Source: Macrostomum lignano
Taxonomy: Eukaryota
Assembly: GCA_002269645.1 (NCBI GenBank)
Contig: NIVC01000749.1
Coordinates: forward strand, 62,001-126,000
Length of the DNA: 64,000 bases
Direction of reading: 5' to 3'
Translations under genes and position numbers: made by a program
Shown here: piece after piece, positions 14,646 to 53,564 of the stretch
How the letters are laid out: each line of letters begins with the position of its first letter
How positions within the stretch are numbered: the stretch's first letter is position 1
Notes under the pieces: model-generated
The model's input: only the letters and a program-made list of their open reading frames with translations
Databases searched by the model: none
Told to the model about the DNA's origin: nothing

Positions 14646-15110
<465 letters not shown>

Positions 15111-17836: not shown

Positions 17837-18436
<600 letters not shown>

Positions 18437-27457: not shown

Positions 27458-28870
27458 CTGCAGATTCAAGAACTGAGGGTAGAGTAGAGAGGCTGCAGAT
27501 TCAAGAACTGACGGTAGAGTAGAGAGGCTGCAGGTTCAAGAACTGAGGGATGGAGTAGAGGCTGCAGATTCAAGAACTGAGGGTAGAGTAGAGAAACTGC
27601 AGATTCAAGAACTGAGGGTAGAGTAGAGAAACTGCAGATTCAAGAACTGAGGGATGGAGTAGAGGCTGCAGATTCAAGAACTGAGGGTAGAGTAGAGAAA
27701 CTACAGATTCAAGAACTGAGGGTAGAGTAGAGAGGCTGCAGATTCAAGAACTGAGGGTAGAGTAGAGAGGCTGCAGATTCAAGAACTGAGGGTAGAGTAG
27801 AGAGGCTGCAGATTCAAGAAATGAGGGTAGAGTAGAGAGGCTGCAGATTCAAGAAATGAGGGTAGAGTAGAGAGGCTGCAGATTCAAGAACTGACGGTAG
27901 AGTAGAGAGGCTGCAGGTTCAAGAACTGAGGGATGGAGTAGAGGCTGCAGATTCAAGAACTGAGGGTACAGTAGAGAGGCTGCAGATTCAAGAACTGAGG
28001 GTAGAGTAGAGAGGCTGCAGATTCAAGAACTGAGGGTAGAGTAGAGAGGCTGCAGGTTCAAGAACTGAGGGTAGAGTAGAGAGGCTGCAGATTCAAGAAC
28101 TGAGGGTAGAGTAGAGAAACTGCAGATTCAAAAACTGAGGGTAGAGTAGAGAGGCTGCAGATTCAAGAACTGAGGGTAGAGTAGAGGCTGCAGATTCAAG
28201 AACTGAGGGTAGAGTAGAGAGGCTGCAGATTCAAGAGCTGAGGGTAGAGTAGAGAGGCTGCAGATTCAAGAACTGAGGGTAGAGTAGAGAGGCTGCAGAT
28301 TCAAGAGCTGAGGGTAGAGTAGAGAGGCTGCAGATTCAAGAACTGAGGGTAGAGTAGAGAGGCTGCAGATTCAAAAACTGAGGGTAGAGTAGAGAGGCTG
28401 CAGATTCAAGAACTGAGGGTAGAGTAGAGAGGCTGCAGATTCAAAAACTGAGGGTAGAGTAGAGAGGCTGCAGATTCAAGAACTGAGGGTAGAGTAGAGA
28501 GGCTGCAGATTCAAGAACTGAGGGTAGAGTAGAGGCTGCAGATTCAAGAACTGAGGGTAGAGTAGAGGCTGCAGATTCAAGAACTGAGGGTAGAGTAGAG
28601 AGGCTGCAGATTCAAAAACTGAGGGTAGAGTAGAGAGGCTGCAGATTCAAGAACTGAGGGTAGAGTAGAGAGGCTGCAGATTCAAAAACTGAGGGTAGAG
28701 TAGAGAGGCTGCAGATTCAAGAACTGAGGGTAGAGTAGAGAGGCTGCAGATTCAAGAACTGAGGGTAGAGTAGAGAAACTGCAGATTCAAGAACTGAGAG
28801 CATAGTAGAGAGGCTGCAGATTCAAGAACTGACGGTAGAGTAGAGAGGCTGCAGATTCAAAAACTGAGGG
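27458..28870 (+). repeat. 35-bp satellite (GGCTGCAGATTCAAGAACTGAGGGTAGAGTAGAGA)n, about 40 units
   Basis: Directly visible; 33-bp variants present. Confidence 0.98.
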
Positions 28871-29903
28871 GAAGAGTGGTCAAAGAAACTAGCAAAGTTA
28901 CATGTACCCCTTGAGCACTGGGCAAGAATTTCGACCCCTGTCATAATTACAAAGCGAAGATGCAAAGGCAGAACGCACAGACTTCCTCAGAGCGCACAGA
29001 GCCGTTTAGCTTGTGAAGCCACTGTGGTTGTCGCCTTTGAGCGTAAATATTTTCTTTGTCTCCAGACGGATCTGTAATCATGTAAATCATAAATTATAAT
29101 GCATCAGCTCGACCTATCAATTTTTACACAAGTATTCATGCGGAACTATAATTTCCGATGGGGCAGGAATGGGATAAGAATCGAAGTTAATTAGGCTGTA
29201 AATATTTATGTAGCTACTGACACATGGCCTAGCTGTGCTGAAAAGGCGCAAGAGACCGGCGCCGGCTAAACTTATTAAAAATGATGCCGCATTTTTATTC
29301 AAAACCACTCTATAGCATATCAGAGTGGTATTTTCTCATCTACGCTCTTATAATAAAAGTTAACCCTTTGTCTCGAAAGCTAAGCCAACAGGCCTACTGG
29401 TATGAAAATATTAACAACTTCGGGTAGATCAGAGGTAAATTTCCCGATTGCTCAAATCAAATCTTTCTTCTAGTAGCAAAAATACATGTAGCGAAATCCA
29501 TTGAAGCAGCCGTTTACTTCAAGTACTTTAGTGCATTAAATGTACGATTTCTTTACTTAAACCACTCAATGCGTTCGAGTACTTAAGAAATAACAAACGA
29601 CAACAAAAATTTCGACTGCTCCATTGAGTTTTGTATTTCCCAGAAAAGAGAACACATTTATTGATGCGAGTTTTTGTTAAAAATGACGCATATGTAAATA
29701 GAAACTATATACAAATTGCTTTGTTGGCTTGAGAATAAATAAATGCTAGATAAAAAGCCTTGAAAAAAAGTAAACTGTACTTACACATTTAGCAGTGACG
29801 TCTAGAAAATTAATGCTCACCTTTATATTAGTTAAATGCGAGTCAACGTAGTTCTCCGCATTGGCTGCTTCAAGGATGCTCTTCAGTTTAGGAGACACTT
29901 GCC

Positions 29904-30646
29904 AACTTGAGAGGTCGTGCCTGCAACACAGGGTTTTGTTTATAAAGCCTCTTCATGTTGTATGAAATAGAAGTGAAATCGAAATTTAGTTAGAGTGATG
30001 ATGATGATGATGACACAAGCTCTGCACCTGCCAACAGCACAATTCACCTGAGTTCTGACCACAGACACTGAATAACTAGATGGGCCACTTAGCACATTTG
30101 CGTGTAAACTACTTTCAGTTCAGTAGTAAGTTAAACAGAAGCATTTTAATGTATTTTTAAAGCCAAGGCTCACTTATTGACTCTTACCCCCACTTAAACC
30201 TCCAACCGCGCCTTTCCACACTACCCCCGCCCCACCCCAATTTTTAATGCCTTTCTCGGAATTCCAGCCTAAAGCGACCATGTACATTTCAGTGGACTGG
30301 CCAATGTACATTATTGCTGAACCAATTAGCAATTTGTTTACGCCTGCAAGCTTGGGCTTCTAAATCTAAAATTATCAGTCATTTCAGCTGCCTTATTTTT
30401 ATAAAATAGCTTATGTATTCTTCTTTGCTACTGAAGTGAGAGTAGAAAGCTGTTTTACTAAGTATACACGCTTGAGTGGCTGGCCTATCTAAGCTATTTT
30501 AGTAATCTGTGGCTCTGAATGACCACGAACTTGAGAAGCCGTGCCTGCAACACAGGGTTTTATTTATATAGCCTCTTCATGTTGTATGAAATAGAAGTGA
30601 AATCGAAATTTAGTTTGTGTGATGATGATGATGATGACACAAGCTC
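29904..30646 (+). repeat. pair of ~120-bp direct repeats ending in (GAT)n
   Basis: 29904-30022 and 30528-30646 share AACTTGAG...GTGCCTGCAACACAGGG...GATGATGACACAAGCTC; may be retroelement 3' tails. Mirrored near 46.3-47.0 kb. Confidence 0.8.
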
Positions 30647-31061: not shown

Positions 31062-34000
31062 CTAAAGTACACATTATTATCGCCGTAGTCTTCTTTGCGC
31101 AGCCAGCCAGACAGAGAAGCAACCCCAATAGCCCGGCCTGGCCAGTGCGTTGCCAGCACGAGAGCTCCGTGTCCGCCCATGGAGTGTCCGAGGAACACCA
31201 GTCGATCTGGGTCGGCCGCTGGCAATTCGACAGTGGCAACTTCAGCCAAAACTTCTACAGCTCGCATTGCGGTCAACGCGCCCGGTCCCTCCCAGTTGTG
31301 CGCCCCGTGACGACTTGGCGCCAACAGCCAAGCGCCGGAAATTCCAAATCTATAACCGGCGCTGGCGTCTCTACCAGCCTCTATAAACTTGTGACTATCG
31401 GCTTGATCCTCAGGCTTAATACTGGTGCCGTGTAGGCTGACTACGATTGGCAATCGAACCGCTTGCGATTTCTGACTGCGACCGGTGCCGCCCTGCCACT
31501 CTATCGGAGCAATCGCGGCAGCTCGCTGCACCGAGCCGTCGTGATCAACGAATGTGAACAGCACGCTCTGGTCTGGCCTGCGACAGCGGAGGGTCACCTG
31601 CGTGGAAATGGAGAAAAGATTGCGATGAATATTTCTGCTTTTTTACTTCCGGTACTTCCCAGCAGTATTCTTACTTGTACTTGGTAGCAGTATTTACTAC
31701 TTTTACAAGCACCAACTACAAAATGTAAAAACCTACAATGGGGTTGTAGCCTAGTACGTGGTTAGAGCGTCGAACTCTTGACCCGCTCGTGGCAACTTTT
31801 ATCCTTGAGCAAGGCACTTAACTCTGCATTGCTTCAGTTCACCCAGCTGTAAAATGGGTGCCAGCATTAGCTGGGGTAACTGAGGGTGCGTGTGGCGATA
31901 TCCAGTTACTGCATGCACTGAATAGCCGTACGCAGCCTTCAGATGCGCCGCGCAATAGCTGCGGCTGAGATTTCGGTTGCACATCCGCCCATTTAGCAAC
32001 TTCCTACCGGTACTTCCCACCAGTAGCAACTTCCTACCGGTACTTCCCACCAGTAGCTACTTCCTACCGGTACTTCCCACCAGTAACTACTTCCTACCGG
32101 TACTTCCCACCAGTAGCTACTTCCTACTGGTACTTCCCACCAGTAGCTACTTCCTATCGGTAATTCCTACTTTTACGCCGTGCCTGTACCTCCCAACCTA
32201 CCTGCATTTCTTGAGCCGGTCCGGAATCTTTACAGCTGAGCCGCAGCTTAAGCCGTAGGCTGTCGCCAGAGGCTTTGCAAGCGGCTCGGCGATCTTTCCC
32301 ACCAGTACCGCCGCCTGTCAGTTGCAAGTCACCCGCTATAAAGCCCAGCTGACCAGGCGCGAGATCTTTAGACGGAATGGGCTTAGTTGGTCCCATCCGG
32401 CAATCAATCTTATCCCCGCTGCAATCAAGGCGACAGCTGAGAGCTCCGCCAGTTCGCAGGCTGACAACTGGCACAAAAATTGGCGCCGATGCTCCCGTTA
32501 AAAACGCGGCGTCTTGTCCTTCTAGTAGCAGCAAATCGGGCAGAAAATCCGGCGGCCAAGCTCGAAACTTTGATCCTGTCGCCGCTGCAGAGACGAAACG
32601 GCACGACACTGCGGCGGCCTGTTTACCGCGAACTCGTGCCGCTAACAGGTGAACACCTCGGCGATTGGTTAGCAATCGCCCGGCAACCGAGGAGACCGCT
32701 CGGCCGCGCATGTAGCTAAAATAGTATTTAAAAAATAATGCTAATCCTGACTCATGCTACTAATAGTAGATAAAAAATGATAATGGAGAGAGAACCTACC
32801 GATCGGCGGATAGATCGACGACGTCATCAACCGTTACAGCAGCCGGTCCGTCGCACACAAGACTCCATTGTAAATCAGTTTTGTGGTCGTCAGCGTCGTT
32901 AATCTCCTTAGTCGTGTACACACCGCCAATGAGCCAGCCCTGGAATTCCAGGGCAGCCGTAGAGCCCAGACTGTTGACCAGTTCACCCCAAGGAACTTCA
33001 GGAGCCAGTCGGATCACTCCATTCGAGTCGATGGTATCAACTGGCGTCCACTCCATCGTAGAGGAATAGAAAAATTCCGTGAAAAGTTTTCGACGATCAA
33101 AATTCTCCGATCGAAGCATCACCGTGGCGACGGCATTTGGCAGGCTGCCAAAAGCTGACAGCACCGGATCGGCGTCCAGCTCCCCCGTTCCGATGGGAAA
33201 CCAGCCGAACCGATGCCAGTCCTCAATCGATGGAGCAGCATCACCTGACTCGACAGTAGATGCAGCCTCTTTGTAGACGAGTTCCGCCAAGTCCCGCTCG
33301 TCCAATTCCAGCAGACAATCGGCCAGGGCCAGACGAAGTTTTCGCAGACGATTCAGCCGCCTGCGACGCACCTTAGTCGACGATGAGGCAGCTTTAGTGG
33401 CAGCGACTGTCGCTTGAGTCACTTCGTTGATTAGGCAGACAATGTGTGGCTAAAACAATGCGTAAAATTTAATAAATATAAGCACGATGGCTGTGGCCTG
33501 GTGGGCATCTCAGGCCTTTAGCGACATCGTCCAACAACCATCGCCAGGCACGAATTCATACACACGCTCACACAGGGTGCACCAACGGTCCTGACTTTCT
33601 AATCGTCAGGTATGTACACTCTGTGACTTGGGGGTGGCTCTCATGGGCCCTCAACGCCAATTTTCCTGCATAAGCCCCAAATGAATGTGGCCACACAGAA
33701 TCGAACCACGAGTCGTGGTGCGAAAGTCAAACGTATTTACCTCTGAGCTGCTCTGCTTCCAATAACGAGCTAATTGACAGACTAATGCATGGAATACAAG
33801 ACTTGCGCTCTATGCTTGAGATTATCACACAATAATTGCGCCCAAAAACATGCGAGTCTGTCATGGTTGGGCCAGTGCCCACAAACGCCCCCTGCAAAGC
33901 AAACTAATTCAAACATTCAATGCGGGATCAATCTGAACTCACCCGGATGTCCCAGTCGGAAAGTCGGGCAGCTGCGAAAGCCAACGGCGAAAGCTCAGCG

Positions 34001-34253
34001 GCACCGGCGCGGTCTTTCCTCTGGCAGGGCGGCCATCCGCGTTGCTGGGCCAAATCAGTCAGCTGGCCGGATGATGGGGTAGAGCTGGATGCTGGGACCA
34101 GCTGGAAATAGAGATAGGTAGATACATGTTACATAGGTAAGAGAACTCACACCCAATTCAATATTTGAACCAACTCACCAATAGAGACAGGCATAGGAGC
34201 ACTGATCTGTCGAAACTTATACGACCGATGTTGCTCTCCATAAAAAAATTCAT
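31062..34253 (-). CDS. secreted alpha/beta-hydrolase (S9/esterase-like), N-terminal five exons; 3' exons not found
   Basis: Exons 34179-34253, 33943-34101, 32800-33449, 32202-32715, 31062-31597 join in frame at GT-AG sites. Signal-peptide-like SVLLCLSLL|LVPASS; motifs WFPIGTGELDADP, TFVDHDGSVQ, VVSLHG, APSRHGAHNWEGPG and nucleophile GHSMGGHG. Confidence 0.88.
31740..31990 (+). mobile_element. CORE-SINE (internally deleted head)
   Basis: CCTTGAGCAAGGCACTTAACTCTGCATTGCTTCAGTTCACCCAGCTGTAAAATGGG matches the MIR/CORE domain; mirror at 44886-45141. Confidence 0.8.
31995..32170 (+). repeat. 30-bp minisatellite (AGCAACTTCCTACCGGTACTTCCCACCAGT)n, about 6 units, intronic
   Basis: Directly visible; mirror at 44712-44886. 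Confidence 0.93.
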
Positions 34254-34323
34254 TTCATTTTGTGTCTCAATTAAATTGAGCAGATTCAAGTAGAAACTGG
34301 ATACAGGAACGGGCTTTCTCAGA

Positions 34324-35095
34324 AACTGAGAATCTGGGAGGCTGGCCCAGCAACTGAGGATCTGGGAGGCTGGCCCAGCAACTGAGGATCTGGGAGGCTG
34401 GCCCAGCAACTGAAGTTCTGGGAGATGGTGGCCCAGCAACTGGGATCTGGGAGGCTGGCCCAGCAACTGAGGATCTGAGAGGCTGGCCCAGCAACTGAAG
34501 TTCTGGGAGATGGTGGCCTAGCAACTGGGATCTGGGAGGCTGGCCTAGCAACTAAGGATCTGGGAGGCTGGCCCAGCAACTGAGGATCTGGGAGGCTGGC
34601 CCAGCAACTGACACTCTGGGAGGCTGGCCCAACAACTGAGGATCTGGGAGGCTGGCCCAACAACTGAGGATCTGGGAGGCTGGCCCAGCAACTGAGGATC
34701 TGGGAGGCTGGCCCAGCAACTGAGGATCTGGGAGGCTGGCCCAACAACTGAGGATCTGGGAGGCCGACCCAGCAACTGAGGATCTGGGAGGCTGGCCCAG
34801 CAACTGAGGATCTGGGAGGCTGGCCCAGCAACTGAGGATCTGGGAGGCTAGCCCAGCAACTGACACTCTGGGAGGCTGGCCCAACAACTGACACTCTGGA
34901 AGGCTGGCCCAGCAACTGAGAATCTGGGAGGTGAGCCCAGCAACTGAGGATCTGAGAGGCTGGCCCAGCAACTGACACTCTGGGAGGCTGGCCCAGCAAC
35001 TGAGAATCTGGGAGGCTGGCCCAGCAACTGAGGATCTGGGAGGCTGGCCCAGCAACTGACACTCTGGGAGGCTGGCCCAGCAACTGAGGATCTGG
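34324..35095 (+). repeat. 28-bp minisatellite (TGGGAGGCTGGCCCAGCAACTGAGGATC)n
   Basis: Directly visible; about 27 units. Confidence 0.97.
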
Positions 35096-35582
35096 GGATT
35101 TGAGAGAGTGAAAATTCAATTTGAGCATAGCATGACAGCCTAAAAATGAGACCTGTGCTGATATACTACTTCTAAGTACGGATGAGACGTACACTTCTGT
35201 TTTTGTAGATGAATAGCTTGTCATATCTATTACAACCAGCGTCTTAAAACGTATTTTATGACTATTAGCAAAATGTAATATCTCTGTAAAATACCTTATC
35301 AGTTTTAAAAAAAATAGCGTGAGCCAGTCCATTGGACTCAAGAAATAATTCAACAGAAATGGTAGCCATTCCTTTGTTTATTACATTTTTATTCAACAAT
35401 TTGCAAGTTAAATCAATACTAAAATTATCATTAGTGACCAAAAAATGAACGTTGTGTGCGTGGGGCAAGTTAATGTTACTAAATTTTTCCAGAGTTTCTA
35501 AGAAATTAACCAACAACTTGTCTTTCTTTATAAAACGATTTGCAAAAAGAGCTTCCTTAAAGAAAAGTAAGCAAACAAGCAA

Positions 35583-36389
35583 ACATCATAAACAGTCACT
35601 CAACATCATCATAAACAGTCACTCTTAACATCATAAAAAACAGTCACTCAGCATCATCAACAGTCACTCAGCATCATCAACAGTCACTCAGCATCATTAA
35701 CAGTCACTCAGCATCATCATCAACAGTCACTCAGAATCATCAACAGTCACTCAGCATCATCATCAACAGGATCACTCAGCATCATCAACAGTCACTCAGC
35801 ATCATCAACAGTCACTCAGCATCATCATCAACAGTCACTCAGCATCATCAACAGTCACTCAGCATCATCATCAACAGTCACTCAGCATCATCAACAGTCA
35901 CTCAGCATCATCATCAACAGTCACTCAGCATCATCATCAACAGTCACTCAGCATCATCATCAACAGTCACTCAGCATCATCAACAGTCACTCAGCATCAT
36001 CATCAACAGTCACTCAACATCATCATAAACAGTCACTCTTAACATCATCATCAACAGTCACTCAGCATCATCAACAGTCACTCAGCATCATCATCAACAG
36101 TCACTCAACATCATCATAAACAGTCACTCAGCATCAACAACAGTCACTCAGCATCATCATCAACAGTCACTCAACATCATCATTAACAGTCACTCTTAAC
36201 ATCATAAAAAACAGTAACTCAGCATCATCAACAGTCACTCAGCATCATCATCAGTCACTCAGCATCATCATAAACAGTCAATCAACATCATCATAAACAG
36301 TCACTCTTAACATCATAAAAACAGTCACTCAGCATCATCAACAGTCACTCAGCATCATCAACAGTCACTCAGCATCATAAACAGTCACT
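35583..36389 (+). repeat. 20/23-bp minisatellite (AACAGTCACTCAGCATCATC[ATC])n
   Basis: Directly visible. Confidence 0.97.
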
Positions 36390-38241
36390 GCACGCAAACG
36401 CAGGACGACAACTCGTTTCTAAATTGCCAATGGTTGTCATAGTAACCAGCGCAAGAAAACCCGCCCGGCCCGGCCGCACTAGCGGTCTCTAATCCGCCTT
36501 TGATCACTAGGTAGTCCGGCAGCCAATTGCTGAACGGCGAGCGCGCCATGGGCGGAATTGTTGGCGAGCTCAGACCAATGACTGCGTCACGTAGGCCGCG
36601 ACTGTCGATGGCAAGGAACACCAGGGCGACACCGTCGGGATCCTCCAGACCAGCCGGAGCCAGGCTGACAAACGCGGATCCGGGCGTCGCTGCAACTAAC
36701 GGAGCCAAAGCGCATTTCCAACGGCGCATTTGAAGCTTTTCGTCATCGATAAAATCTTGACCAGCCGAAGAATTCCAACCGCCGAGAAAGATGAAGTTTT
36801 TAATGCCGAGCGAGTTTAGCTCGCCGCGACGTTGCCAAGTTAATACGGGCGAGGGAGTGTCCGAGGTTAGCAGAAACTGATTGGCCAAGAATACGGCCAA
36901 GCTTTCCGGACAGATGGCCGGATCTGTGGAAGTAAAGAAAAGCATTGGTTTCAAACGATTCAGAATTATCAAATTAACATTATCACTATGTGAACATATA
37001 ACGCTAAGTAAGTGCTGCGTAAAATACAGCATTCACGCTGTGAAGTTTTGTTAATGTTGATAATAATAATAATAATAATAATTGATTTCACCTGCTCCAA
37101 TTAGGACAGATGTGCAACCGACAGCTCAGCCGCAGCTATTGCGCGGCGCATCTGAAGGCTGCGTACGGCTGTTCAGTCCAAGGACTGCGGGGTCGCCACA
37201 CACACCCTCAATTACCCTCAGTTACCCCAGCTAAAGCTGGCACCCATTTTACAGCTGGGTGAACTGAAGCAATGCATAATTAAGTGTCTTACTCAAGGAC
37301 ACAAATTGTTTCAGTGGGATCGGGAATCGAACCCCGACCTCCCAGTCGTGAGTCGGACGCTTTAACCACTATAGGCTACAACCCCTGTTAATGTTGAGAA
37401 TACACACTCAACACACACTAATCTTATGCTTAGACTAAACTTATCTATCTTAGCTCGCAGGAATATGGGCACAGTCCTAAAACTGATATATGATAATTAA
37501 ATGCTATGAGCGCAAAAACAGGGTTTGAGAGTGTGCTTAGGGAAAGAGGGGCAGACTGATAAACACATAAACAAGGCTGGAGAGAGAAAACGTAAAGTAT
37601 AGATAAGAACAGAAAAATGAGCCCTGGAAGCGGGGTTTAGCGACCAACATGCAGGGTGAGGAGATGAGAATTAAACACACGCACTGAGAGAGACAGCCAA
37701 TCAGAACGCAGATGGACGAACGGAGAGCAAGGAGCGCAAAAAACAGACAAACACACAGCGGAGACAGGAGCCTCAGTGCAAATGCACGTAATCACGACAG
37801 GAGGATTACTTTACAATACTTTACATTACGAGATTATTACACACAACTGCAAATTAATCTCAAGTAGTACGCACCAAATAGAATGGCAAAAGGCTGCTCC
37901 GCGACCCGGCGCATCGGTCCTAGTTGACTCTCAAGTCGCACTATTCTATCCCAGTTGTCACCTGACTGAATCTGTTGATCATCGGCATCAAATTTTCGAC
38001 ACTTCCAATCGCCATAACTACTAGAGAAATTTGACTGCCAATTTCTGAGGCACTTCACTGTCAAAAATTTTTTTGGAGTCTCTGTTGCCGAATCTGTCAG
38101 CAAATCAACGTCTTGACCGTCAACACTTTTAAACTGATCAATGGAGTAGGCATTTTGGGATTGCAAGTCAAAATTGGCTGTGAACTGCAGAACATTTTCA
38201 GTTGTAACCACTGCCATTGCATTGGTATCATCCGATTCAAC
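36385..38241 (-). CDS. C-terminal two exons, probably of the same alpha/beta-hydrolase family
   Basis: Exon 37875-38241 (cttcag|VESDDT...GPMRRVAEQPFAILF G|gtgcgt) splices in phase 1 to exon 36385-36923 (cacag|AT...PTIPPMARSPFSNWLPDYLVIKG...GPGGFSCAGYYDNHW...SSCVCVQ*). The family link is from recalled C-terminal motifs, not a search. Confidence 0.75.
37061..37385 (-). mobile_element. full-length tRNA-derived CORE-SINE with 12-bp TSD
   Basis: A box TAGCCTATAGTGG, B box GGTTCGATTCCC, CORE domain, (ATT)n tail; TGTTAATGTTGA at 37049-37060 and 37386-37397. Confidence 0.9.
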
Positions 38242-38769: not shown

Positions 38770-38898
38770 NNNNNNNNNNNNNNNNNNNNNNNNNNNNNNN
38801 NNNNNNNNNNNNNNNNNNNNNNNNNNNNNNNNNNNNNNNNNNNNNNNNNNNNNNNNNNNNNNNNNNNNNNNNNNNNNNNNNNNNNNNNNNNNNNNNNN
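38770..38898. other. assembly gap (129 N) at the axis of the inverted duplication
   Basis: Run of N. Confidence 1.
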
Positions 38899-40571
38899 AC
38901 AGTGAAGTGCCTCAGAAATTGGCAGTCAAATTTCTCTAGTGGTTATGGCGATTGGAAGTGTCGAAAATTTGATGCTGATGATCAACAGATTCAGTCAGGT
39001 GACAACTGGGATAGAATAGTGCGACTTGAGAGTCAACTAGGACCGATGCGCCGGGTCGCGGAGCAGCCTTTTGCCATTCTATTCGGTGCGTACTACTTGA
39101 AATTATTTCGCAGTAGTGTGTAATAATCTCGTAATGTAAAGTATTATAAAGTAATCCTCCTGTCGTGATTACGTGCATTTGCACTGAGGCTCCTGTCTCC
39201 GCTGTGTGTTTGTCTGTTTTTTGCGTTCCCTTGCTCTCCGTTCGTCCATCTGCGTTCTGATTGGCTGTCTCTCTCAGTGCGTGTGTTTAATTCTCATCTC
39301 CTCACCCTGCATGTTGGTCGCTAAACCCCGCTTCCAGGGCTCATTTTTCTGTTCTTATCTATACTTTACGTTTTCTCTCTCCAGCCTTGTTTATGTGTTT
39401 ATCAGTCTGCCCCTCTTTCCCTAAGCACACTCTCAAACCCTGTTTTTGCGCTCATAGCATTTAATTATCATATATCAGTTTTAGGACTGTGCCCATATTC
39501 CTGCGAGCTAAGATAGATAAGTTTAGTCTAAGCATAAGATTAGTGTGTGTTGAGTGTGTATTCTCAACATTAACAGGGGTGTAGCTATAGTGGTTAAAGC
39601 GTCCGACTCACGACTGGAGGTCGGGGGTTCGATTCCCGATCCCACTGAAACAATTTGTGTCCTTGAGTAAGACACTTAATTATGCATTGCTTCAGTTCAC
39701 CCAGCTGTAAAATGGGTGCCAGCTTTAGCTGGGGTAACTGAGGGTAACTGAGGGTGTGTGTGGCGACCCGCAGTCCTTGGACTGAACAGCCGTACGCAGC
39801 CTTCAGATGCGCCGCGCAATAGCTGCGGCTGAGCTGTCGGTTGCACATCTGTCCTAATTGGAGCAGGTGAAATCAATTATTATTATTATTATTATTATCA
39901 ACATTAACAAAACTTCACAGCGTGAATGCTGTATTTTACGCAGCACTTACTTAGCGTTATATGTTCACATAGTGATAATGTTAATTTGATAATTCTGAAT
40001 CGTTTGAAACCAATGCTTTTCTTTACTTCACAGATCCGGCCATCTGTCCGGAAAGCTTGGCCGTATTCTTGGCCAATCAGTTTCTGCTAACCTCGGACAC
40101 TCCCTCGCCCGTATTAACTTGGCAACGTCGCGGCGAGCTAAACTCGCTCGGCATTAAAAACTTCATCTTTCTCGGCGGTTGGAATTCTTCGGCTGGTCAA
40201 GATTTTATCGATGACGAAAAGCTTCAAATGCGCCGTTGGAAATGCGCTTTGGCTCCGTTAGTTGCAGCGACGCCCGGATCCGCGTTTGTCAGCCTGGCTC
40301 CGGCTGGTCTGGAGGATCCCGACGGTGTCGCCCTGGTGTTCCTTGCCATCGACAGTCGCGGCCTACGTGACGCAGTCATTGGTCTGAGCTCGCCAACAAT
40401 TCCGCCCATGGCGCGCTCGCCGTTCAGCAATTGGCTGCCGGACTACCTAGTGATCAAAGGCGATTAGAGACCGCTAGTGCGGCCGGGCCGGGCGGGTTTT
40501 CTTGCGCTGGTTACTATGACAACCATTGGCAATTTAGAAACGAGTTGTCGTCCTGCGTTTGCGTGCAGTGA
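38899..40571 (+). CDS. mirror copy of the C-terminal exons; 1-bp frameshift near 40460 (possibly sequencing error)
   Basis: Exon <38899-39085 and exon 40034-40571; GGCGGATT in the left arm versus GGCGATT here gives a premature TAG. Confidence 0.65.
39576..39897 (+). mobile_element. full-length CORE-SINE, mirror copy
   Basis: Flanked by TCAACATTAACA on both sides. Confidence 0.9.
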
Positions 40572-41500
40572 CTGTTTATGATGCTGAGTGACTGTTGATG
40601 ATGCTGAGTGACTGTTGATGATGCTGAGTGACTGTTTTTTATGATGTTAAGAGTGACTGTTAATGATGATGTTGAGTGACTGTTGATGATGATGCTGAGT
40701 GACTGTTGTTGATGCTGAGTGACTGTTTATGATGATGTTGAGTGACTGTTGATGATGATGCTGAGTGACTGTTGATGATGCTGAGTGACTGTTGATGATG
40801 CTGAGTGACTGTTGATGATGTTGAGTGACTGTTTATGATGATGCTGAGTGACTGATGATGATGCTGAGTGACTGTTGATGATGCTGAGTTACTGTTTTTT
40901 ATGATGTTAAGAGTGACTGTTAATGATGATGTTGAGTGACTGTTGATGATGATGCTGAGTGACTGTTGTTGATGCTGAGTGACTGTTTATGATGATGTTG
41001 AGTGACTGTTGATGATGATGCTGAGTGACTGTTGATGATGCTGAGTGACTGTTGATGATGATGTTAAGAGTGACTGTTTATGATGATGTTGAGTGACTGT
41101 TGATGATGATGCTGAGTGACTGTTGATGATGCTGAGTGACTGTTGATGATGATGCTGAGTGACTGTTGATGATGATGCTGAGTGACTGTAGATGATGATG
41201 CTGAGTGACTGTTGATGATGCTGAGTGACTGTTGATGATGATGCTGAGTGACTGTTGATGATGCTGAGTGACTGTTGATGATGATGCTGAGTGACTGTTG
41301 ATGATGCTGAGTGACTGTTGATGATGCTGAGTGATCCTGTTTATGATGATGCTGAGTGACTGTTGATGATTCTGAGTGACTGTTGATGATGCTGAGTGAC
41401 TGTTGATGATGCTGAGTGACTGTTGATGATGCTGAGTGACTGTTTTTTATGATGTTAAGAGTGACTGTTTATGATGATGTTGAGTGACTGTTTATGATGT
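40567..41500 (-). repeat. 20/23-bp minisatellite, mirror copy
   Basis: Directly visible. Confidence 0.97.
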
Positions 41501-41987
41501 TTGCTTGTTTGCTTACTTTTCTTTAAGGAAGCTCTTTTTGCAAATCGTTTTATAAAGAAAGACAAGTTGTTGGTTAATTTCTTAGAAACTCTGGAAAAAT
41601 TTAGTAACATTAACTTGCCCCACGCACACAACGTTCATTTTTTGGTCACTAATGATAATTTTAGTATTGATTAAACTTGCAAATTGTTGAATAAAAATGT
41701 AATAAACAAAGGAATGGCTACCATTTCTGTTGAATTATTTCTTGAGTCCAATGGACTGGCTCACGTCTATTTTTTTAAAACTGATAAGGTATTTTACAGA
41801 GATATTACATTTTGCTAATAGTCATAAAATACGTTTTAAGACGCTGGTTGTAATAGATATGACAAGCTATTCATCTACAAAAACAGAAGTGTACGTCTCA
41901 TCCGTACTTAGAAGTAGTATATCAGCACAAGTCTCATTTTTAGGCTGTCATGCTATGCTCAAATTGAACTTTCACTCTCTCAAATCC

Positions 41988-42588
41988 CCAGATCCTCAGT
42001 TGCTGGGCCAGCCTCCCAGATCCTCAGTTGCTAGGCCAGCCTCCCAGATCCCAGTTGCTGGGCCAGCCTCCCAGATCCTCAGTTGCTGGGCCAGCCTCCC
42101 AGATCCTCAGTTGCTGGGCCAGCCTCCCAGATCCTCAGTTGCTGGGCCAGCCTCCCAGATCCTCAGTTGCTGGGCCAGCCTCGCAGTGTCAGTTGCTGGG
42201 CCAGCCTCCCAGATCCTCAGTTGCTGGGCCAGCCTCCCAGATCCTCAGTTGCTGGGCCAGCCTCCCAGATCCTCAGTTGCTGGACCAGCCTCCCAGATCC
42301 TCAGTTGCTGGGCCAGCCTCCCAGATCCTCAGTTGCTGGGCCAGCCTCCCAGATCCTCAGTTGCTGGACCAGCCTCCCAGATCCTCAGTTGCTGGGCCAG
42401 CCTCCCAGATCCTCAGTTGCTAGGCCAGCCTCCCAGATCCCAGTTGCTGGGCCACCATCTCCCAGAACTTCAGTTGCTGGGCCAGCCTCCCAGATCCTTA
42501 GTTGCTGGGCCAGCCTCGCAGTGTCAGTTGCTGGGCCAGCCTCCCAGATCCTCAGTTGCTGGGCCAGCCTCCCAGATTCTCAGTTGCT
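41988..42588 (-). repeat. 28-bp minisatellite, mirror copy
   Basis: Directly visible; about 21 units. Confidence 0.97.
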
Positions 42589-42655
42589 GAGAAAGCCCGT
42601 TCTTGTATCCAGTTTCTACTTGAATCTGCTTAATTTAATTGAGACACAAAATGAA

Positions 42656-45600
42656 ATGAATTTTTTCATGGAGAGCAATATCGGTCGTATAAGTTTCGAC
42701 AGATCAGTGCTGCTATGCCTGTCTCTATTGGTGAGTTGGTTCAAATATTGAATTGGGTGTGAGTTCTCTTACCTATGTAACATGTATCTACCTATCTCTA
42801 TTTCCAGCTGGTCCCAGCATCCAGCTCTACCCCATCATCCGGCCAGCTGACTGATTTGGCACAGCAACGCGGATGGCCGCCCTGCCAGAGGAAAGACCGC
42901 GCCGGTGCCGCTGAGCTTTCGCCGTTGGCTTTCGCAGCTGCCCGACTTTCCGACTGGGACATCCGGGTGAGTTCAGATTGATCCAGGGGGGCGTTTGTGG
43001 GCACTGGCTCAACCATGACAGACTCGCATGTTTTTGGGCGCAATTATTGTGTGATAACCTCAAGCACAGAGCGCAAGTCTTGTATGCCATGCATCAGTCT
43101 GTCAATTAGCTCGTTATTGGAAGCAGAGCAGCTCAGAGGTAAATACGTCTGACTTTTGCACCACAACTGCTGGTTCGATTCTGTGAGTGACCACATTCAT
43201 TTGGGGCTTGTGCAGGAAACTTGGCGTTGAGGGCCCGTGAGGGCCACCCCCAAGTCACAGAGTGTACATACCTGACGATTAGAAAGTCAGGACCGTTGGT
43301 GCACCCTGTGTGAGCGTGTGTATGAATTCGTGCCTGGCGATGGTTGTTGGACGATGTCGCTAAAGGCCTGAGATGCCCACCAGGCCACAGCCATCGTGCT
43401 TATATTTATTAAATTTCACGCATTGTTTTAGCCACACATTGTCTGCCTAATCAACGAAGTGACTCAAGCGACAGTCGCTGCCACTAAAGCTGCCTCATCG
43501 TCGACTAAGGTGCGTCGCAGCCGGCTGAATCGTCTGCGAAAACTTCGTCTGGCCCTGGCCGATTGTCTGCTGGAATTGGACGAGCGGGACTTAGCGGAAC
43601 TCATCTACAAAGAGGCTGCATCTACTGTCGAGTCAGGTGATGCTGCTCCATCGATTGAGGACTGGCATCGGCTCGGCTGGTTTCCCATCGGAACGGGGGA
43701 GCTGGACGCCGATCCGGTGCTGTCAGCTTTTGGCAGCCTGCCAAATGCCGTCGCCACGGTGATGCTTCGATCGGAGAATTTTGATCGTCGAAAACTTTTC
43801 ACGGAACTTTTCTATTCCTCTACGATGGAGTGGACGCCAGTTGATACCATCGACTCGAATGGAGTGATCCGACTGGCTCCTGAAGTTTCTTGGGGCGAAC
43901 TGGTCAACAGTCTGGGCTCTACGTCTGCCCTGGAGTTCCAGGGCTGGCTCATTGGCGGTGTGTACACGACCAAGGAGATTAACGACGCTGACGACCACGA
44001 AACTGATTTACAATGGAGTCTTGTGTGCGACGGACCGGCTGCTGTAACGGTTGATGACGTCGTCGATCTATCCGCCGATCGGTAGGTTCTCTCTCCATTA
44101 TTATTTTTTATCTACTATTAGTAGCATGAGTCAGGATTAGCATTATTTTTTAAATACTATTTTAGCTACATGCGCGGCCGAGCGGTCTCCTCGGTTGCCG
44201 GGCGGTTGCTAACCAATCGCCGAGGTGTTCACCTGTTAGCGGCACGAGTTCGCGGTAAACAGGCCGCCGCAGTGTCGTGCCGTTTCGTCTCTGCAGCGGC
44301 GACAGGATCAAAATTTCGAGCTTGGCCGCCGGATTTTCTGCCCGATTTGCTGCTACTAGAAGGACAAGACGCCGCGTTTTTAACGGGAGCATCGGCGCCA
44401 ATTTTCGTGCCAGTTGTCAGCCTGCGAACTACCGGAGCTCTCAGCTGTCGCCTTGATTGCAGCGGGGATAAGATTGATTGCCGGATGGGACCATCTAAGC
44501 TCATTCCATCTAAAGATCTCGCGCCTGGTCAGATGGGCTTTATAGCGGGTGACTTGCAACTGACAGGCGGCGGTACTGGTGGGAAAGATCGCCGAACCGC
44601 TTGCAAAGCCTCTGGCGACAGCCTACGGCTTAAGCTGCGGCTCAGCTGTAAAGATTCCGGACCGGCTCAAGAAATGCAGGTAGGTTGGGAGGTACAGGCA
44701 CGGCGTAAAAGTAGGAATTACCGATAGGAAGTAGCTACTGGTGGGAAGTACCAGTAGGAAGTAGCTACTGGTGGGAAGTACCGGTAGGAAGTAGTTACTG
44801 GTGGGAAGTACCGGTAGGAAGTAGCTACTGGTGGGAAGTACCGGTAGGAAGTTGCTACTGGTGGGAAGTACCGGTAGGAAGTTGCTAAATGGGCGGATGT
44901 GCAACCGAAATCTCAGCCGCAGCTATTGCGCGGCGCATCTGAAGGCTGCGTACGGCTATTCAGTGCATGCAGTAACTGGAGATCGCCACACACACCCTCA
45001 GTTACCCCAGCTAATTCTGGCACCCATTTTACAGCTGGGTGAACTGAAGCAATGCAGAGTTAAGTGTCTTGCTCGAGGATAAAAGTTGCTACGAGCGGGT
45101 CAAGAGTTCGACGCTCTAACCACGTACTAGGCTACAACCCCATTGTAGGTTTTTACATTTTGTAGTTGGTGCTTGTAAAAGTAGGAAATACTGCTACCAA
45201 GTACAAGTAAGAATACTGCTGGGAAGTACCGGAAGTAAAAAAACAGAAATATTCATCGCAATCTTTTCTCCATTTCCACGCAGGTGACCCTCCGCTGTCG
45301 CAGCCCAGACCAGAGCGTGCTGTTCACATTCGTTGATCACGACGGCTCGGTGCAGCGAGCTGCCGCGATTGCTCCGATAGAGTGGCAGGGCGGCACCGGT
45401 CGCAGTCAGAAATCGCAAGCGGTTCGATTGCCAATCGTAGTCAGCCTACACGGCACCAGTATTAAGCCTGAGGATCAAGCCGATAGTCACAAGTTTATAG
45501 AGGCTGGTGGAGACGCCAGCGCCGGTTATAGATTTGGAATTTCCGGCGCTTGGCTGTTGGCGCCAAGTCGTCACGGGGCGCACAACTGGGAGGGACCCGG

Positions 45601-45819
45601 CGCGTTGACCGCAATGCGAGCTGTAGAAGTTTTGGCTGAAGTTGCCACTGTCGAATTGCCAGCGGCCGACCCAGATCGACTGGTGTTCCTCGGACACTCC
45701 ATGGGCGGACACGGAGCTCTCGTGCTGGCAACGCACTGGCCAGGCCGGGCTATTGGGGTTGCTTCTCTGTCTGGCTGGCTGCGCAAAGAAGACTACGGCG
45801 ATAATAATGTGTACTTTAG
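42656..45819 (+). CDS. mirror copy: secreted alpha/beta-hydrolase, N-terminal five exons
   Basis: Exons 42656-42730, 42808-42966, 43432-44081, 44166-44679, 45284-45819 (about 644 codons), all open with matched phases. Confidence 0.88.
44886..45141 (-). mobile_element. CORE-SINE, mirror copy
   Basis: Reverse complement of 31740-31990. Confidence 0.8.
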
Positions 45820-48073
45820 GTAAGTTCCAGTGCCGCTTTCACGCGGGTTCACAGAACCTTAACCGGACAATGGACAACAGAAGCAGTAGGACGTTACACT
45901 TTCAAATTCAAGGAAGTTTTCAGTTTTTTCGCACTAAATTCCTAATACTCGTATATCACCTAAACTTCCGAATATCAAACGAGTTAATAACCATTTCCGA
46001 TGTTCTTAAAACTTTGAATTCGATAAGTACCGTTCTAGTTTAATGGGTCGCTTTCACAAGCTCGAAATTTCAGAAACAAGTTTTTCGGTACGTTAATTAC
46101 TGCAGAAAAAAACTCGCACTCAGAAAATGCAGTTAAAAAAGCAAAAAATAAAAAAAAACAAAAAAACTTTCTAGTACTACTGGTACTTTCAGAGATTGTG
46201 AAGTTTTGAGAACTTGTGAAATGCCCCCAGTTTAGTAGCAAGCTATGGAGCTATGGAGTAGCGAGCTAGCGAGCTTGTGTCATCATCATCATCATCACAC
46301 TAACTAAATTTCGATTTCACTTCTATTTCATACAACATGAAGAGGCTATATAAAAAAAACCGGCCCTGTGTTGCAGGCACGGCTTCTCAAGTTCGTGGTC
46401 ATTCAGAGCCACAGATTACTAAAATAGCTTAGATAGGCCAGCCACTCAAGCGTGTATACTTAGTAAAACAGCTTTCTACTCTCACTTCAGTAGCAAAGAA
46501 GAATACATAAGCTATTTTATAAAAATAAGGCAGCTGAAATGACTGATAATTTTAGATTTAGAAGCCCAAGCTTGCAGGCGTAAACAAATTGCTAATTGGT
46601 TCAGCAATAATGTACATTGGCCAGTCCACTGAAATGTACATGGTCGCTTTAGGCTGGAATTCCGAGAAAGGCAATAAAAATTGGGGTGGGGCGGGGGTAG
46701 TGTGGAAAGGCGCGGTTGGAGGTTTAAGTGGGGGTAAGAGTCAATAAGTGAGCCTTGGCTTTAAAAATACATTAAAATGCTTCTGTTTAACTTACTACTG
46801 AACTGAAAGTAGTTTACACGCAAATGTGCTAAGTGGCCCATCTAGTTATTCAGTGTCTGTGGTCAGAACTCAGGTGAATTGTGCTGTTGGCAGGTGCAGA
46901 GCTTGTGTCATCATCATCATCATCACACTAACTAAATTTCGATTTCACTTCTATTTCATACAACATGAAGAGGCTATATAAATAAAACCCTGTGTTGCAG
47001 GCACGACCTCTCAAGTTGGCAAGTGTCTCCTAAACTGAAGAGCATCCTTGAAGCAGCCAATGCGGAGAACTACGTTGACTCGCATTTAACTAATATAAAG
47101 GTGAGCATTAATTTTCTAGACGTCACTGCTAAATGTGTAAGTACAGTTTACTTTTTTTCAAGGCTTTTTATCTAGCATTTATTTATTCTCAAGCCAACAA
47201 AGCAATTTGTATATAGTTTCTATTTACATATGCGTCATTTTTTTAACAAAAATTCGCATCAATAAATGTGTTCTCTTTTCTGGGAAATACAAAACTCAAT
47301 GGAGCAGTCGACATTTTTGTTGTCGTTTGTTATTTCTTAAGTTCTCGAACGCATCCGAGTGGTTTTGGTAAAGAAATCGTACATTTAATGCACTAAAGTA
47401 CTTGAAGTAAACGGCTGCTTCAACGGATTTCGCTACATGTATTTTTGCTACTAGAAGAAAGATTTGATTTGAGCAATCGGGAAATTTACCTCTGATCTAC
47501 CCGAAGTTGTTAATATTTTCATACCAGTAGGCCTGTTGGCTTAGCTTTCGAGACAAAGGGTTAACTTTTATTATAAGAGCGTAGATGAGAAAATACCACT
47601 CTGATATGCTATAGAGCGGCTGAAGCGTTGAGGCACAAAGTTTGAATAAAAATGTGGCATCATTTTTAATAAGTTTAGCCGGCGCCGGTCTCTTGTGCCT
47701 TTTCAGCACAGCTAGGCCATGTGTCAGTAGCTACATAAATATTTACAGCCTAATTAACTTCGATTTTTATCCCATTCCTGCCCCATCGGAAATTATAGTT
47801 CCGCATGAATACTTGTGTAAAAATTGATAGGTCGAGCTGATGCATTATAATTTATGATTTACATGATTACAGATCCGTCTGGAGACAAAGAAAATATTTA
47901 CACTCAAAGGCGACAACCACAGTGGCTTCACAAGCTAAACGGCTCTGTGCGCTCTGAGGAAGTCTGTGCGTTCTGCCTTTGCATCTCCGCTTTGTAATTA
48001 TGGCAGGGGTCGAAATTCTTGCCCAGTGCTCAAGGGGTACATGTAACTTTGCGAATTTCTTTGACCGCTCTTC

Positions 48074-51000: not shown

Positions 51001-53564
51001 CCCTCAGTTCTTGAACCTGCAGCCTCTCTACTCTACCCTCATTTCTTGAATCTGCAGCCTCTCTACTCTACCCTCAGTTCTTGAACCTGCAGCCTCTCTA
51101 CTCTACCCTCAGTTCTTGAATTTGCAGCCTCTCTACTCTACTCTGAGTTCTTGAATTTGCAGCCTCTACTCTACCCTCAGCTCTTGAATCTGCAGCCTCT
51201 CTACTCTACCCTCAGTTCTTGAACCTGCAGCCTCTCTACTATACTCTCAGTTCTTGAATCTGCAGCCTCTCTACTCTACCCTCAGTTCTTGAATCTGCGG
51301 CCTCTTTACTCTACCCTCAGTTCTTGAATCTGCAGCCTTTCTACTCTACCGTCAGTTCTTGAATCTGCAGCCTCTCTACTCTACTCTCAGTTCTTGAATC
51401 TGCAGCCTCTCTACTCTACCCTCAGTTCTTGAATCTGCAGCCTTTCTACTCTACCCTCATTTCTTGAATCTGCAGCCTCTCTACTCTACCCTCATTTCTT
51501 GAATCTGCAGCCTCTCTACTCTACCCTCAGTTCTTGAATCTGCAGCCTCTACTCCATCCCTCAGTTCTTGAACCTGCAGCCTCTCTACTCTACCGTCAGT
51601 TCTTGAATCTGCAGCCTCTCTACTCTACCCTCAGCTCTTGAATCTGCAGCCTCTCTACTCTACCCTCAGTTCTTGAATCTGCAGCCTCTCTACTCTACCC
51701 TCAGTTCTTGAATCTGCAGCCTCTCTACTCTACCCTCAGTTTTTGAATCTGCAGCCTCTCTACTCTACCCTCAGCTCTTGAATCTGCAGCCTCTCTACTA
51801 TACTCTCAGTTCTTGAATCTGCAGCCTCTCTACTCTACCCTCAGTTTTTGAATCTGCAGCCTCTCTACTCTACCCTCAGTTGTTGAATCTGCAGCCTCTC
51901 TACTCTACCCTCAGCTCTTGAATCTGCAGTTTCTCTACTCTACCCTCAGTTCTTGAATCTGCAGCCTCTACTCTACCCTCAGTTCTTGAATCTGCAGCCT
52001 CTACTCTACCCTCAGTTCTTGAATCTGCAGCCTCTCTACTCTACCCTCAGTTCTTGAACCTGCAGCCTCTCTACTCTACCCTCAGTTTTTGAATCTGCAG
52101 CCTCTCTACTCTACCCTCAGTTCTTGAATCTGCAGCCTCTCTACTCTACCCTCAGTTCTTGAATCTGCAGCCTCTCTACTCTACTCTCAGTTCTTGAATC
52201 TGCAGCCTCTCTACTCTACCCTCAGTTCTTGAATTTGCAGCCTCTCTACTGTACCCTCATTTCTTGAATCTGCAGCCTCTCTACTCTACCCTCAGTTCTT
52301 GAACCTGCAGCCTCTCTACTCTACCCTCATTTCTTGAATCTGCAGCCTCTCTACTCTACCCTCAGTTCTTGAACCTGCAGCCTCTCTACTCTACCCTGAG
52401 TTCTTGAACCTGCAGCCTCTCTACTCTACTCTGAGTTCTTGAATTTGCAGCCTCTACTCTACCCTCAGCTCTTGAATCTGCAGCCTCTCTACTCTACCCT
52501 CAGTTCTTGAACCTGCAGCCTCTCTACTATACTCTCAGTTCTTGAATCTGCAGCCTCTCTACTCTACCCTCAGTTCTTGAATCTGCGGCCTCTCTACTCT
52601 ACCCTCAGTTCTTGAATCTGCAGCCTTTCTACTCTACCGTCAGTTCTTGAATCTGCAGCCTCTCTACTCTACTCTCAGTTCTTGAATCTGCAGCCTCTCT
52701 ACTCTACCCTCAGTTCTTGAATCTGCAGCCTTTCTACTCTACCCTCATTTCTTGAATCTGCAGCCTCTCTACTCTACCCTCATTTCTTGAATCTGCAGCC
52801 TCTCTACTCTACCCTCAGTTCTTGAATCTGCAGCCTCTCTACTCTACCGTCAGTTCTTGAATCTGCAGCCTCTCTACTCTACCCTCAGCTCTTGAATCTG
52901 CAGCCTCTCTACTCTACCCTCAGTTCTTGAATCTGCAGCCTCTCTACTCTACCGTCAGTTCTTGAATCTGCAGCCTCTCTACTCTACCCTCAGTTTTTGA
53001 ATCTGCAGCCTCTCTACTCTACCCTCAGCTCTTGAATCTGCAGCCTCTCTACTATACTCTCAGTTCTTGAATCTGCAGCCTCTCTACTCTACCCTCAGTT
53101 TTTGAATCTGCAGCCTCTCTACTCTACCCTCAGTTCTTGAATCTGCAGCCTCTCTACTCTACCCTCAGCTCTTGAATCTGCAGTTTCTCTACTCTACCCT
53201 CAGTTCTTGAATCTGCAGCCTCTACTCTACCCTCAGTTCTTGAATCTGCAGCCTCTACTCTACCCTCAGTTCTTGAATCTGCAGCCTCTCTACTCTACCC
53301 TCAGTTCTTGAACCTGCAGCCTCTCTACTCTACCCTCAGTTTTTGAATCTGCAGCCTCTCTACTCTACCCTCAGTTCTTGAATCTGCAGCCTCTCTACTG
53401 TACCCTCAGTTCTTGAATCTGCAGCCTCTCTACTCTACCCTCAGTTCTTGAATTTGCAGCCTCTCTACTGTACCCTCATTTCTTGAATCTGCAGCCTCTC
53501 TACTCTACCCTCAGTTCTTGAATCTGCAGCCTCTCTACTCTACCCTCAGTTCTTGAATCTGCAG
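48074..53564 (-). repeat. 35-bp satellite, mirror copy, about 157 units with ~1.3-1.4-kb higher-order blocks
   Basis: Directly visible; the rare variant CTGCGGCC recurs at 49903, 51295 and 52583. Confidence 0.98.

Follow-up and report, generated by a model that had tools for sequence, protein, structure and literature searches.

The locus considered here raises the question of why the last exons of a gene for a secreted hydrolase should precede its first ones, and of what has become of the exons between them. It lies in a stretch of 64,000 nucleotides from the flatworm Macrostomum lignano (assembly Mlig_3_7, GCA_002269645.1; scaffold NIVC01000749.1, record positions 62001-126000), hereafter the window, which forms an inverted repeat with a left and a right arm. 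An earlier note, made from the letters of the window, had described in each arm a penultimate exon and a last exon with its stop codon, then ~2.1 kb of mostly satellite DNA, and then an exon with the initiating ATG followed by four more; the coordinates of this series are borne out in both arms. The reading preferred here, to which we give a probability of about 0.5, is that two partial copies of one ARB_06907-like secreted α/β-hydrolase gene, derived by duplication, meet head-to-tail at this locus, a 3′ part (exons 7-10) coming first and a 5′ part (exons 1-6) lying 2.1 kb further downstream on that strand. Three outcomes are at stake, namely the decaying debris of a duplication, an assembly illusion that conceals an intact gene, and a rare instance, in a flatworm, of gene-to-gene trans-splicing. 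Ordinary causes account for most of what looks strange here (the missing middle, the paired arms, and the abrupt end), and the rearrangement that remains is real and modestly interesting, with a small chance of something unusual.

The proteins encoded by the candidate exons are matched best by M. lignano models (97-98% identity) and next, at ~35-54% identity, by proteins named 'uncharacterized secreted protein ARB_06907-like' or 'Peptidase S9' from molluscs, a brachiopod, annelids, echinoderms, amphioxus, a sponge, Physarum, and dinoflagellates. The ARB_06907-like α/β-hydrolase family, which includes fungi among its taxa, is characterized by matches to the Pfam entries Esterase (PF00756) and Peptidase_S9 (PF00326). 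When both halves were compared with the same full-length proteins, a Saccostrea protein (P0003) was found to match exon 5 with its residues 280-477 (E = 1e-54) and exon 10 with its residues 699-862 (E = 1e-25), similarities that are far above chance. In tblastn searches, P0003, P0004, P0007, and P0017 match exons 9 and 10 in addition to exons 3, 5, and 6. The assignment of the C-terminal exons to this family, which the earlier note had made from motifs, is shown by these full-length matches to be correct.

A composite of exons 1-6 and exons 7-10 encodes 1119 amino acids (aa) and can be aligned end to end with eight family members, sharing 27-36% identity with them over the whole length and retaining 60/60 invariant columns, including GHSMGG, GSNDRVVPP, and GHWWWD. 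It carries the Ser/Asp/His motifs together with the C-terminal motifs PTIPPMxRSPFSN and GPGG..CAG, and scores above the Pfam cut-offs for both Esterase (31.1 bits; cut-off 22) and Peptidase_S9 (25.1 bits; cut-off 22.6). Since the Peptidase_S9 match, at residues 590-749, spans the exon 6/7 join at 678/679, the break between the gene pieces falls inside the catalytic domain, and the triad is divided, with Ser on the N-part (exons 1-6) and Asp and His on the C-part (exons 7-10). Judged by their sequences, both halves are of one ARB_06907-like α/β-hydrolase family. No member of the family has a solved structure, and the nearest solved relatives, generic esterases and cutinases such as LC-Est1C (3wyd), match around the nucleophile elbow only. 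The M. lignano gene departs from its family in that the exons are not collinear, exons 7-10 being upstream of exons 1-6, and in that neither annotation has a full-length model: the NCBI and UniProt M. lignano proteomes hold three N-part and three C-part Mlig_3_7 models, one pair per copy of the locus, plus split models of the older assembly ML2, and no full-length hydrolase.

The middle of the gene, which the earlier note took to be missing, has been found. All exon borders were verified by splicing and translation, with GT-AG sites throughout. It had been claimed that nothing continues the gene after the exon with GHSMGG; in fact, exon 6 (HDLSSWQVSPKLKSILEAANAENYVDSHLTNIK) is present in both arms (Table 1), 1.14 kb beyond the exon 5 donor, and is homologous to residues 563-623 of a Mytilus protein (P0004). 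Exons 7 and 8 were not found inside the window, either by tblastn with five family proteins or by blastn with the sequence of a third copy of the locus, which is carried by NIVC01000184.1 (contig 184, represented by the stretches L001, L005, and L003; a further stretch, L004, is the continuation of the right arm past the window). In this sister copy, exon 7 (L001 9210-9361, GLPIFLRVGSNDRVVPPYYLRRLARQLASINATRVTFDEVSGQGHWWWDTR) carries the catalytic Asp and His (GSNDRVVPP, GQGHWWWD), which are not in the window, and exon 8 lies at L001 9979-10246 (RPNDGGVMNDEQ...SSLK). Given that L001 12080-23330 matches window 38769-27458 and that L001 runs on upstream where the window has Ns, exons 7-8 are located within the region hidden by the gap. 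The missing middle is an assembly effect of this gap of 129 Ns, and the exons for Asp and His, which were to be sought elsewhere in the genome, lie next to exon 9. All ancestral segments are kept and reordered, exons 7-10 and then exons 1-6, and the set is complete in contig 184.

Two side observations concern exon 7 and the intron that follows it in the sister copy. The UniProt ML2 model A0A1I8FVF9 (P0062) skips SGQGHWWWDTR, the catalytic His segment of exon 7 (L001 9329-9361); a canonical GT donor at L001 9362 retains this segment, in agreement with the family consensus HWWWDT, and the omission is probably an annotation error. Intron 7 contains a 52-bp tandem repeat of 6.9 copies (L001 9426-9787).

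The adjacency of tail and head is genuine, because it lies inside three contigs, because each of the spacer arrays is shorter than 1 kb, and because transcriptional units based on RNA appear, from the gene names, to cross the spacer. The order is seen with the same spacer and on one strand in both arms and in NIVC01000184.1, three contigs that were assembled independently, and the distance from the stop codon of exon 10 to exon 1 is 2131 bp in the left arm and 2084 bp in the right. Two satellites make up ~74% of the left-arm spacer, and the unique stretch between the two arrays measures 485 bp in the left arm and 487 bp in the right. The N-terminal sequence MNFFMESNIGRISFDRSVLLCLSLLLVPASSS, a putative signal peptide, has a hydrophobic core followed by small residues. 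The earlier note was right that the order occurs in each arm; the arms, however, are two Canu contigs and not two independent observations on one chromosome. The first of the alternatives that it offered, a headless copy followed by a tailless copy, is the best fit.

The absent partner halves have been looked for on both sides. Downstream of exon 6, no exons 7-10 were found, at the protein or DNA level, in 29.8 kb of the left arm, in 30.2 kb of the right arm (window and L004), or in ~33 kb of contig 184 (L001, L005, and L003), 4.1 kb of it unseen; these 4.1 kb have a counterpart in both arms without exons 7-10 and are too short for the exon 7-10 cluster of 5.3 kb. Upstream of exon 7, no exons 1-6 were found in the 9.2 kb visible in contig 184. 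It had been proposed that the gap or the distal sequence might hold the missing exons and so leave two ordinary tandem genes; the gap region does have exons 7-8 in the sister contig, but no partner half occurs within 9.2 kb upstream or ~30 kb downstream. Nor is the locus a circular permutation in the protein sense, another term that had been applied to it, for the C-part ends in a stop codon, 2.1 kb of spacer follow, and the N-part has its own ATG and signal-like peptide, so that no single frame exists. By analogy, the locus looks like an early stage of the permutation-by-duplication route, with which it shares a tail followed by a head on one strand, a short spacer, and outer halves absent nearby, whereas the pieces here are not fused in one frame and no intact parental copy is seen.

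With respect to integrity, the N-part and C-part frames are both open in the left arm. Exon 10 of the right arm has lost 1 nt near 40463 (GG to G), which shifts the frame of the last ~36 codons, and in contig 184 exon 5 has a 1-nt deletion (GGG to GG) at L001 ~19486. Frameshifts are hence found in 2/6 gene parts, both in short G runs, and these deletions may be consensus errors of the PacBio/Pilon procedure or real lesions. Comparison of the arms gives 14.5 non-synonymous and 11.5 synonymous differences for the N-part, with a ratio of non-synonymous to synonymous rates (dN/dS) of 0.43, and 1 and 2, respectively, for the C-part, with a dN/dS of 0.16; the synonymous excess gives a binomial p of 0.006-0.047. 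These counts speak, if modestly, against free drift of the pieces after the divergence of the copies.

How the two parts are transcribed may be judged in part from their names. In Mlig_3_7, the prefix of a gene name denotes a cluster of transcriptional units (95% identity), and the suffix gN denotes the genes cut from a unit at spliced-leader or poly(A) sites by the TBONE pipeline (PMC5730564). The C-part and the N-part are Mlig010965.g1 and Mlig010965.g2 in contig 184, and Mlig011572.g1 and Mlig011572.g2 in the right arm. Because the prefix is common to two parts that have no sequence similarity to each other, the names point to a single RNA-seq-derived unit that spans the C-part, the spacer, and the N-part. 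The repeat-adjusted intergenic distance of ~550 bp (2131 bp minus ~1580 bp of satellite) is under the 1-kb operon criterion of PMC8629364.

The splice sites that face the break are both phase 0, exon 6 ending AAG/GTGAGC and exon 7 starting cgcag/GGG, and a join of the two exons would read GACTCGCATTTAACTAATATAAAG/GGGCTACCTATTTTCCTTCGAGTC. The N-part models (P0001, P0058) read through the exon-6 donor to a stop 24 codons on, and unspliced exon 6 continues into its own intron as ...ATATAAAG/GTGAGCATTAAT. The ML2 C-part models start exactly at codon 1 of exon 7, an exon that is without an in-frame ATG upstream. The M. lignano spliced leader ends ...GCATG, and its addition requires an acceptor without an upstream donor in cis; ~30% of M. 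lignano genes are trans-spliced (PMC8629364). A join of spliced leader and exon 7 would read ...AATTTATTGCATG/GGGCTACC, in which the ATG of the leader would be in frame, and the C-part may be expressed as a spliced-leader message.

On the preferred reading, the most likely origin would be a tandem duplication, the outer halves of which were later lost or truncated, or else a partial tandem duplication. The rearrangement would be older than the recent multiplication of the genome, and every copy of the locus would carry it as a result. In the window, SSPACE would have joined two diverged copies head-to-head into a palindrome that looks false, with the 129-N join concealing exons 7-8. Both parts would be transcribed through as one unit, which annotators split into a C-part gene and an N-part gene; the orphan exon-7 acceptor would take the spliced leader, the terminal AUG of which would be in frame, and the N-part message would end via read-through into intron 6. 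Neither product alone would be an active hydrolase, the triad being split. Several points weigh against this reading. The fates by spliced leader and by read-through are deduced from the sequence and the model starts rather than from reads. There is modest evidence of some purifying selection on both parts, which would be unexpected for simple dead fragments. A path of duplication followed by truncation takes several events. The view upstream ends 9.2 kb from exon 7 with the depth unseen, which leaves room, at perhaps three chances in ten, for an intact upstream copy or a collapsed duplicate. Finally, the route by which SSPACE would join two copies head-to-head is not obvious, and a real inverted duplication retains a minor share of the probability.

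The explanation that survives best beside the preferred one, possible and clearly the less probable of the two, is that an intact gene is accompanied by a partial tandem duplicate. The true exons 1-6 would then be separated from exon 7, on its upstream side, by >9.2 kb, as part of a large intron 6 filled with repeats, or be unassembled or collapsed, and the visible exons 1-6 would be an extra tailless copy; in the mirror case, the visible C-part would be the extra one. A tail followed by a head is the usual signature of tandem copies, and the region is rich in satellites, with lengths of 1.4, 5.5, and >=7.5 kb for the 35-bp array across the copies, the last of these in contig 184 (L005 15376 to the end of L005). 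Collapsed and expanded copies are documented in the assembly (PMC10733133), and both public M. lignano assemblies come from one PacBio data set (PMC5730564). The stretch upstream of exon 7 has already been lengthened by the insertion of a Ty3/gypsy-type retrotransposon, a fragment of which (L001 1235-5786) has a gag zinc knuckle, reverse transcriptase, RNase H, and integrase, TG...CA ends, and an ACTAGT target duplication, the empty site being seen at window 1674-1679 in an uninterrupted repeat. Against an intact gene stand the lack of a fourth N-part or C-part model in either proteome, with contig 184 extending for hundreds of kb on both sides, and the size of the introns other than the exon 6-7 break, which are 77-2361 bp long. 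Moreover, the visible N-part has the dN/dS given above and not one of ~1, and other same-strand gene models fill the sequence downstream of exon 6.

The next explanation concerns the arms. The window is an inverted repeat of ~30 kb per arm, in which ~3334-38061 is mirrored from 38899 to a window-equivalent position of ~68400 (L004); its centre consists of Ns only, and sequence continuity is absent there. Mlig_3_7 was built from PacBio reads assembled into Canu contigs that were scaffolded with SSPACE (PMC5730564), so these Ns are a join made by the scaffolder. The left contig extends 707 bp further toward the centre than the right one, and the arms differ by 0.8-1.7% single-nucleotide polymorphisms (SNPs) in unique sequence and by many indels up to kilobase scale. 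The DV1 line has three paralogous subgenomes, with 1.9-2.4% SNPs and many indels between them, and 36% of the length of Mlig_3_7 scaffolds is chimeric (PMC10733133). With the copy on NIVC01000184.1, there are three copies of the locus in the assembly, the number expected for three subgenomes. Across exons 1-5 (3.2 kb) and exons 9-10 (1.7 kb), contig 184 and the left arm do not differ by a single SNP; in the neighbourhood of exon 6, contig 184 is nearer to the right arm (0.33%) than to the left (0.85%). This mosaic relationship may reflect redundant assembly, conversion between copies, or mixing in consensus building or polishing. The three diverged copies, the N gap at the join, and the mosaic similarity all agree with the published description of chimeric and redundant Mlig_3_7 scaffolds; that description, however, is of chimerism between subgenomes generally, and a head-to-head join of the copies of one locus was not found described. 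The palindrome is probably a scaffolding error, in which copies of the locus that belong to different subgenomes were joined head-to-head.

A real chromosomal palindrome, i.e. an inverted duplication that broke in intron 8 and exon 9, is unlikely by comparison. In its favor, an SSPACE join of this sort requires read pairs facing outward from both contig ends, palindrome centres frequently break assemblies, both contigs stop within ~700 bp of the same point of the locus, and the mirror symmetry holds over ~30 kb. Large palindromes, such as those of the human Y chromosome, are kept nearly identical by gene conversion, and the arms here are not nearly identical; their SNPs and kilobase indels instead resemble the divergence of paralogous copies (PMC10733133). 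The centre, moreover, has nothing but Ns, the assembly contains exactly as many copies as three subgenomes predict, and contig 184, SNP-free against the left arm in two genic stretches, passes straight through the supposed centre.

A further explanation takes the locus to be a split, permuted gene with one N-part and one C-part per copy, rejoined in RNA into the 1119-aa frame. The exon-6 donor would be joined to the exon-7 acceptor between two pre-mRNAs (trans-splicing) or back-spliced into a translatable circle, with a predicted junction of ...CATTTAACTAATATAAAG/GGGCTACCTATTTTCCTTCG. Genes completed by trans-splicing are known, such as mod(mdg4) and lola in Drosophila and eri-6/7 in C. elegans, and base-pairing between the half-introns occurs in some, not all, trans-spliced cases. 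To these the locus would be similar in its orphan 5′ and orphan 3′ splice sites, in their compatible phases, and in pieces neither of which seems functional alone; it would differ in that its pieces are on the same strand, reversed, and apparently in one transcriptional unit, and in that the spliced leader of the host offers the acceptor a simpler fate. The donor after exon 6 is strong and the acceptor before exon 7 is canonical, the parts divide the triad between them without the loss of any invariant residue, both parts are under some constraint, and their names suggest one transcriptional unit. In addition, the annotations give one N-part and one C-part per copy, and exon 7, lacking an upstream in-frame ATG, must join something, in a species that trans-splices ~30% of its genes (PMC8629364). 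On the other hand, no sequence that connects exon 6 with exon 7, whether transcript or protein, was found in a collection of 5.8 billion proteins, and the longest complementarity between the intron downstream of exon 6 and that upstream of exon 7 is 13 nt, which is at chance level. The annotated N-part message reads past the exon-6 donor, the in-frame AUG of the spliced leader would account for the orphan acceptor without any gene-to-gene trans-splicing, and 1-nt frameshifts affect 2/6 parts. Rejoining in RNA is improbable; if it were true, trans-splicing would have rescued a gene that is both split and permuted, in a species where about a third of the genes are trans-spliced already.

That the adjacency of tail and head is itself a false join within the spacer satellites is hardly credible, even with a spacer that is ~74% satellite and an assembly in which 36% of scaffold length is chimeric, because the short arrays and the 485/487-bp unique stretch between them should be spanned by single PacBio reads, the adjacency falls within three separate contigs and not at gaps, and the RNA-based transcriptional units appear to cross the spacer.

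With regard to precursor RNA structure, a dispersed repeat of ~200 bp at window 39651-39854 (intron 9) recurs inverted at 44891-45088 (intron 4), the copies being 91-92% complementary; they would pair inside a tail-to-head precursor RNA, and the exon 6 and exon 7 sites are not bracketed by them. Intron 4 also holds a 30-bp tandem repeat of 5.8 copies (window 31994-32167 and 44714-44887).

For curation, the head-to-head join in scaffold NIVC01000749.1 should be regarded as suspect, and the six 'partial hypothetical protein' models PAA77347-77350 and PAA88521-88522 as pieces of one hydrolase family member. The locus also provides a compact test case, of a size suited to the polymerase chain reaction, in which a triad is divided over two reversed, apparently co-transcribed fragments that still look constrained. 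The window sequence agrees with the public record, in that a stretch fetched from NIVC01000749.1 (L002) is 100% identical to window 44223-38899 and 38769-19746. Rfam and tRNA scans over the window gave no matches, and neither did searches for the gene identifiers of the locus in the literature or for the scaffold identifiers in the supplement of PMC10733133. The coordinates of the features are collected in Table 1.

Table 1. Features of the hydrolase locus and its surroundings, in window positions
Feature	Positions	Strand	Details
Left arm exon 9 (penultimate; VESDD...AILF)	37875..38241	-	AG/GT sites, homology
Left arm exon 10 (last)	36385..36923	-	TGA stop 36387-36385; homologous to C-termini of P0003 and P0017
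Left-arm spacer satellite, 20/23/43-bp	35582..36389		begins at the stop codon
Left-arm spacer satellite, 28-bp	34320..35096
Left arm exon 1	34179..34253	-	ATG and signal-peptide-like start, MNFFMESNIGRISFDRSVLLCLSLL; splicing/translation
Left arm exon 2	33943..34101	-	splicing/translation
Left arm exon 3	32800..33449	-	splicing/translation
Left arm exon 4	32202..32715	-	splicing/translation
Left arm exon 5 (GHSMGG nucleophile)	31062..31597	-	donor TTTAG/GTAAGT at 31062
Left arm exon 6 (HDLSSWQV...HLTNIK)	29821..29920	-	donor AAG/GTGAGC; homology, splice sites
Scaffold gap, 129 Ns	38770..38898		centre of inverted repeat; SSPACE join of two Canu contigs
Right arm exon 9, 3′ piece only	38899..39085	+	cut by gap
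Right arm exon 10	40034..40571	+	1-nt deletion near 40463
Right-arm spacer satellites	40567..42589		20/43-bp at 40567-41499, 28-bp at 41987-42589
Right arm exon 1 (ATG)	42656..42730	+
Right arm exon 2	42808..42966	+
Right arm exon 3	43432..44081	+
Right arm exon 4	44166..44679	+
Right arm exon 5 (GHSMGG)	45284..45819	+	donor at 45819
Right arm exon 6	47001..47100	+	homology, splice sites
35-bp satellite past exon 6, left arm	27458..28877		1.4 kb
35-bp satellite past exon 6, right arm	48074..53565		5.5 kb
Unrelated 254-aa open reading frame	4032..4796	-	25 kb past exon 6; no Pfam match

Downstream of exon 6, the sequence contains 35-bp, 21-bp, and 8-bp repeats and an unrelated open reading frame (ORF) of 254 aa on the same strand. 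Its counterparts in the other copies are annotated as hypothetical proteins: PAA88520 in contig 184, with 98% identity, and PAA77351 in the part of the right arm past the window, with 92%. The ML2 model A0A1I8HC41, a 672-aa 'GPCR' (G protein-coupled receptor) that absorbs this ORF, was set aside as an unreliable gene translated through the 21-bp satellite; its start coincides with an acceptor at 26946 (attcag/ACA). A collinear match of 1.5 kb, in which the contig 184 sequence preceding exon 7 aligns with window 1424-2925, was considered as a shared giant intron and rejected, because it is a dispersed or inverted repeat of 84-91% identity that also occurs in L003 and because the similarity stops at both ends.

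The arms differ further in their satellites. A 238-bp satellite at window 6500-12900 is present in the left arm only, with start-to-start spacings of 139, 236-238, and 376-377 bp in a higher-order pattern, and the right arm has ~1.2 kb (L004 8020-9233) in its place. Long (CAGACAGA)n-type microsatellites, the open frames of which translate as TDRQ or SVCL repeats, and arrays of the 21-bp satellite give rise to long spurious ORFs at window 14482-15160, 17661-18520, 18894-19802, and 59650-60900.

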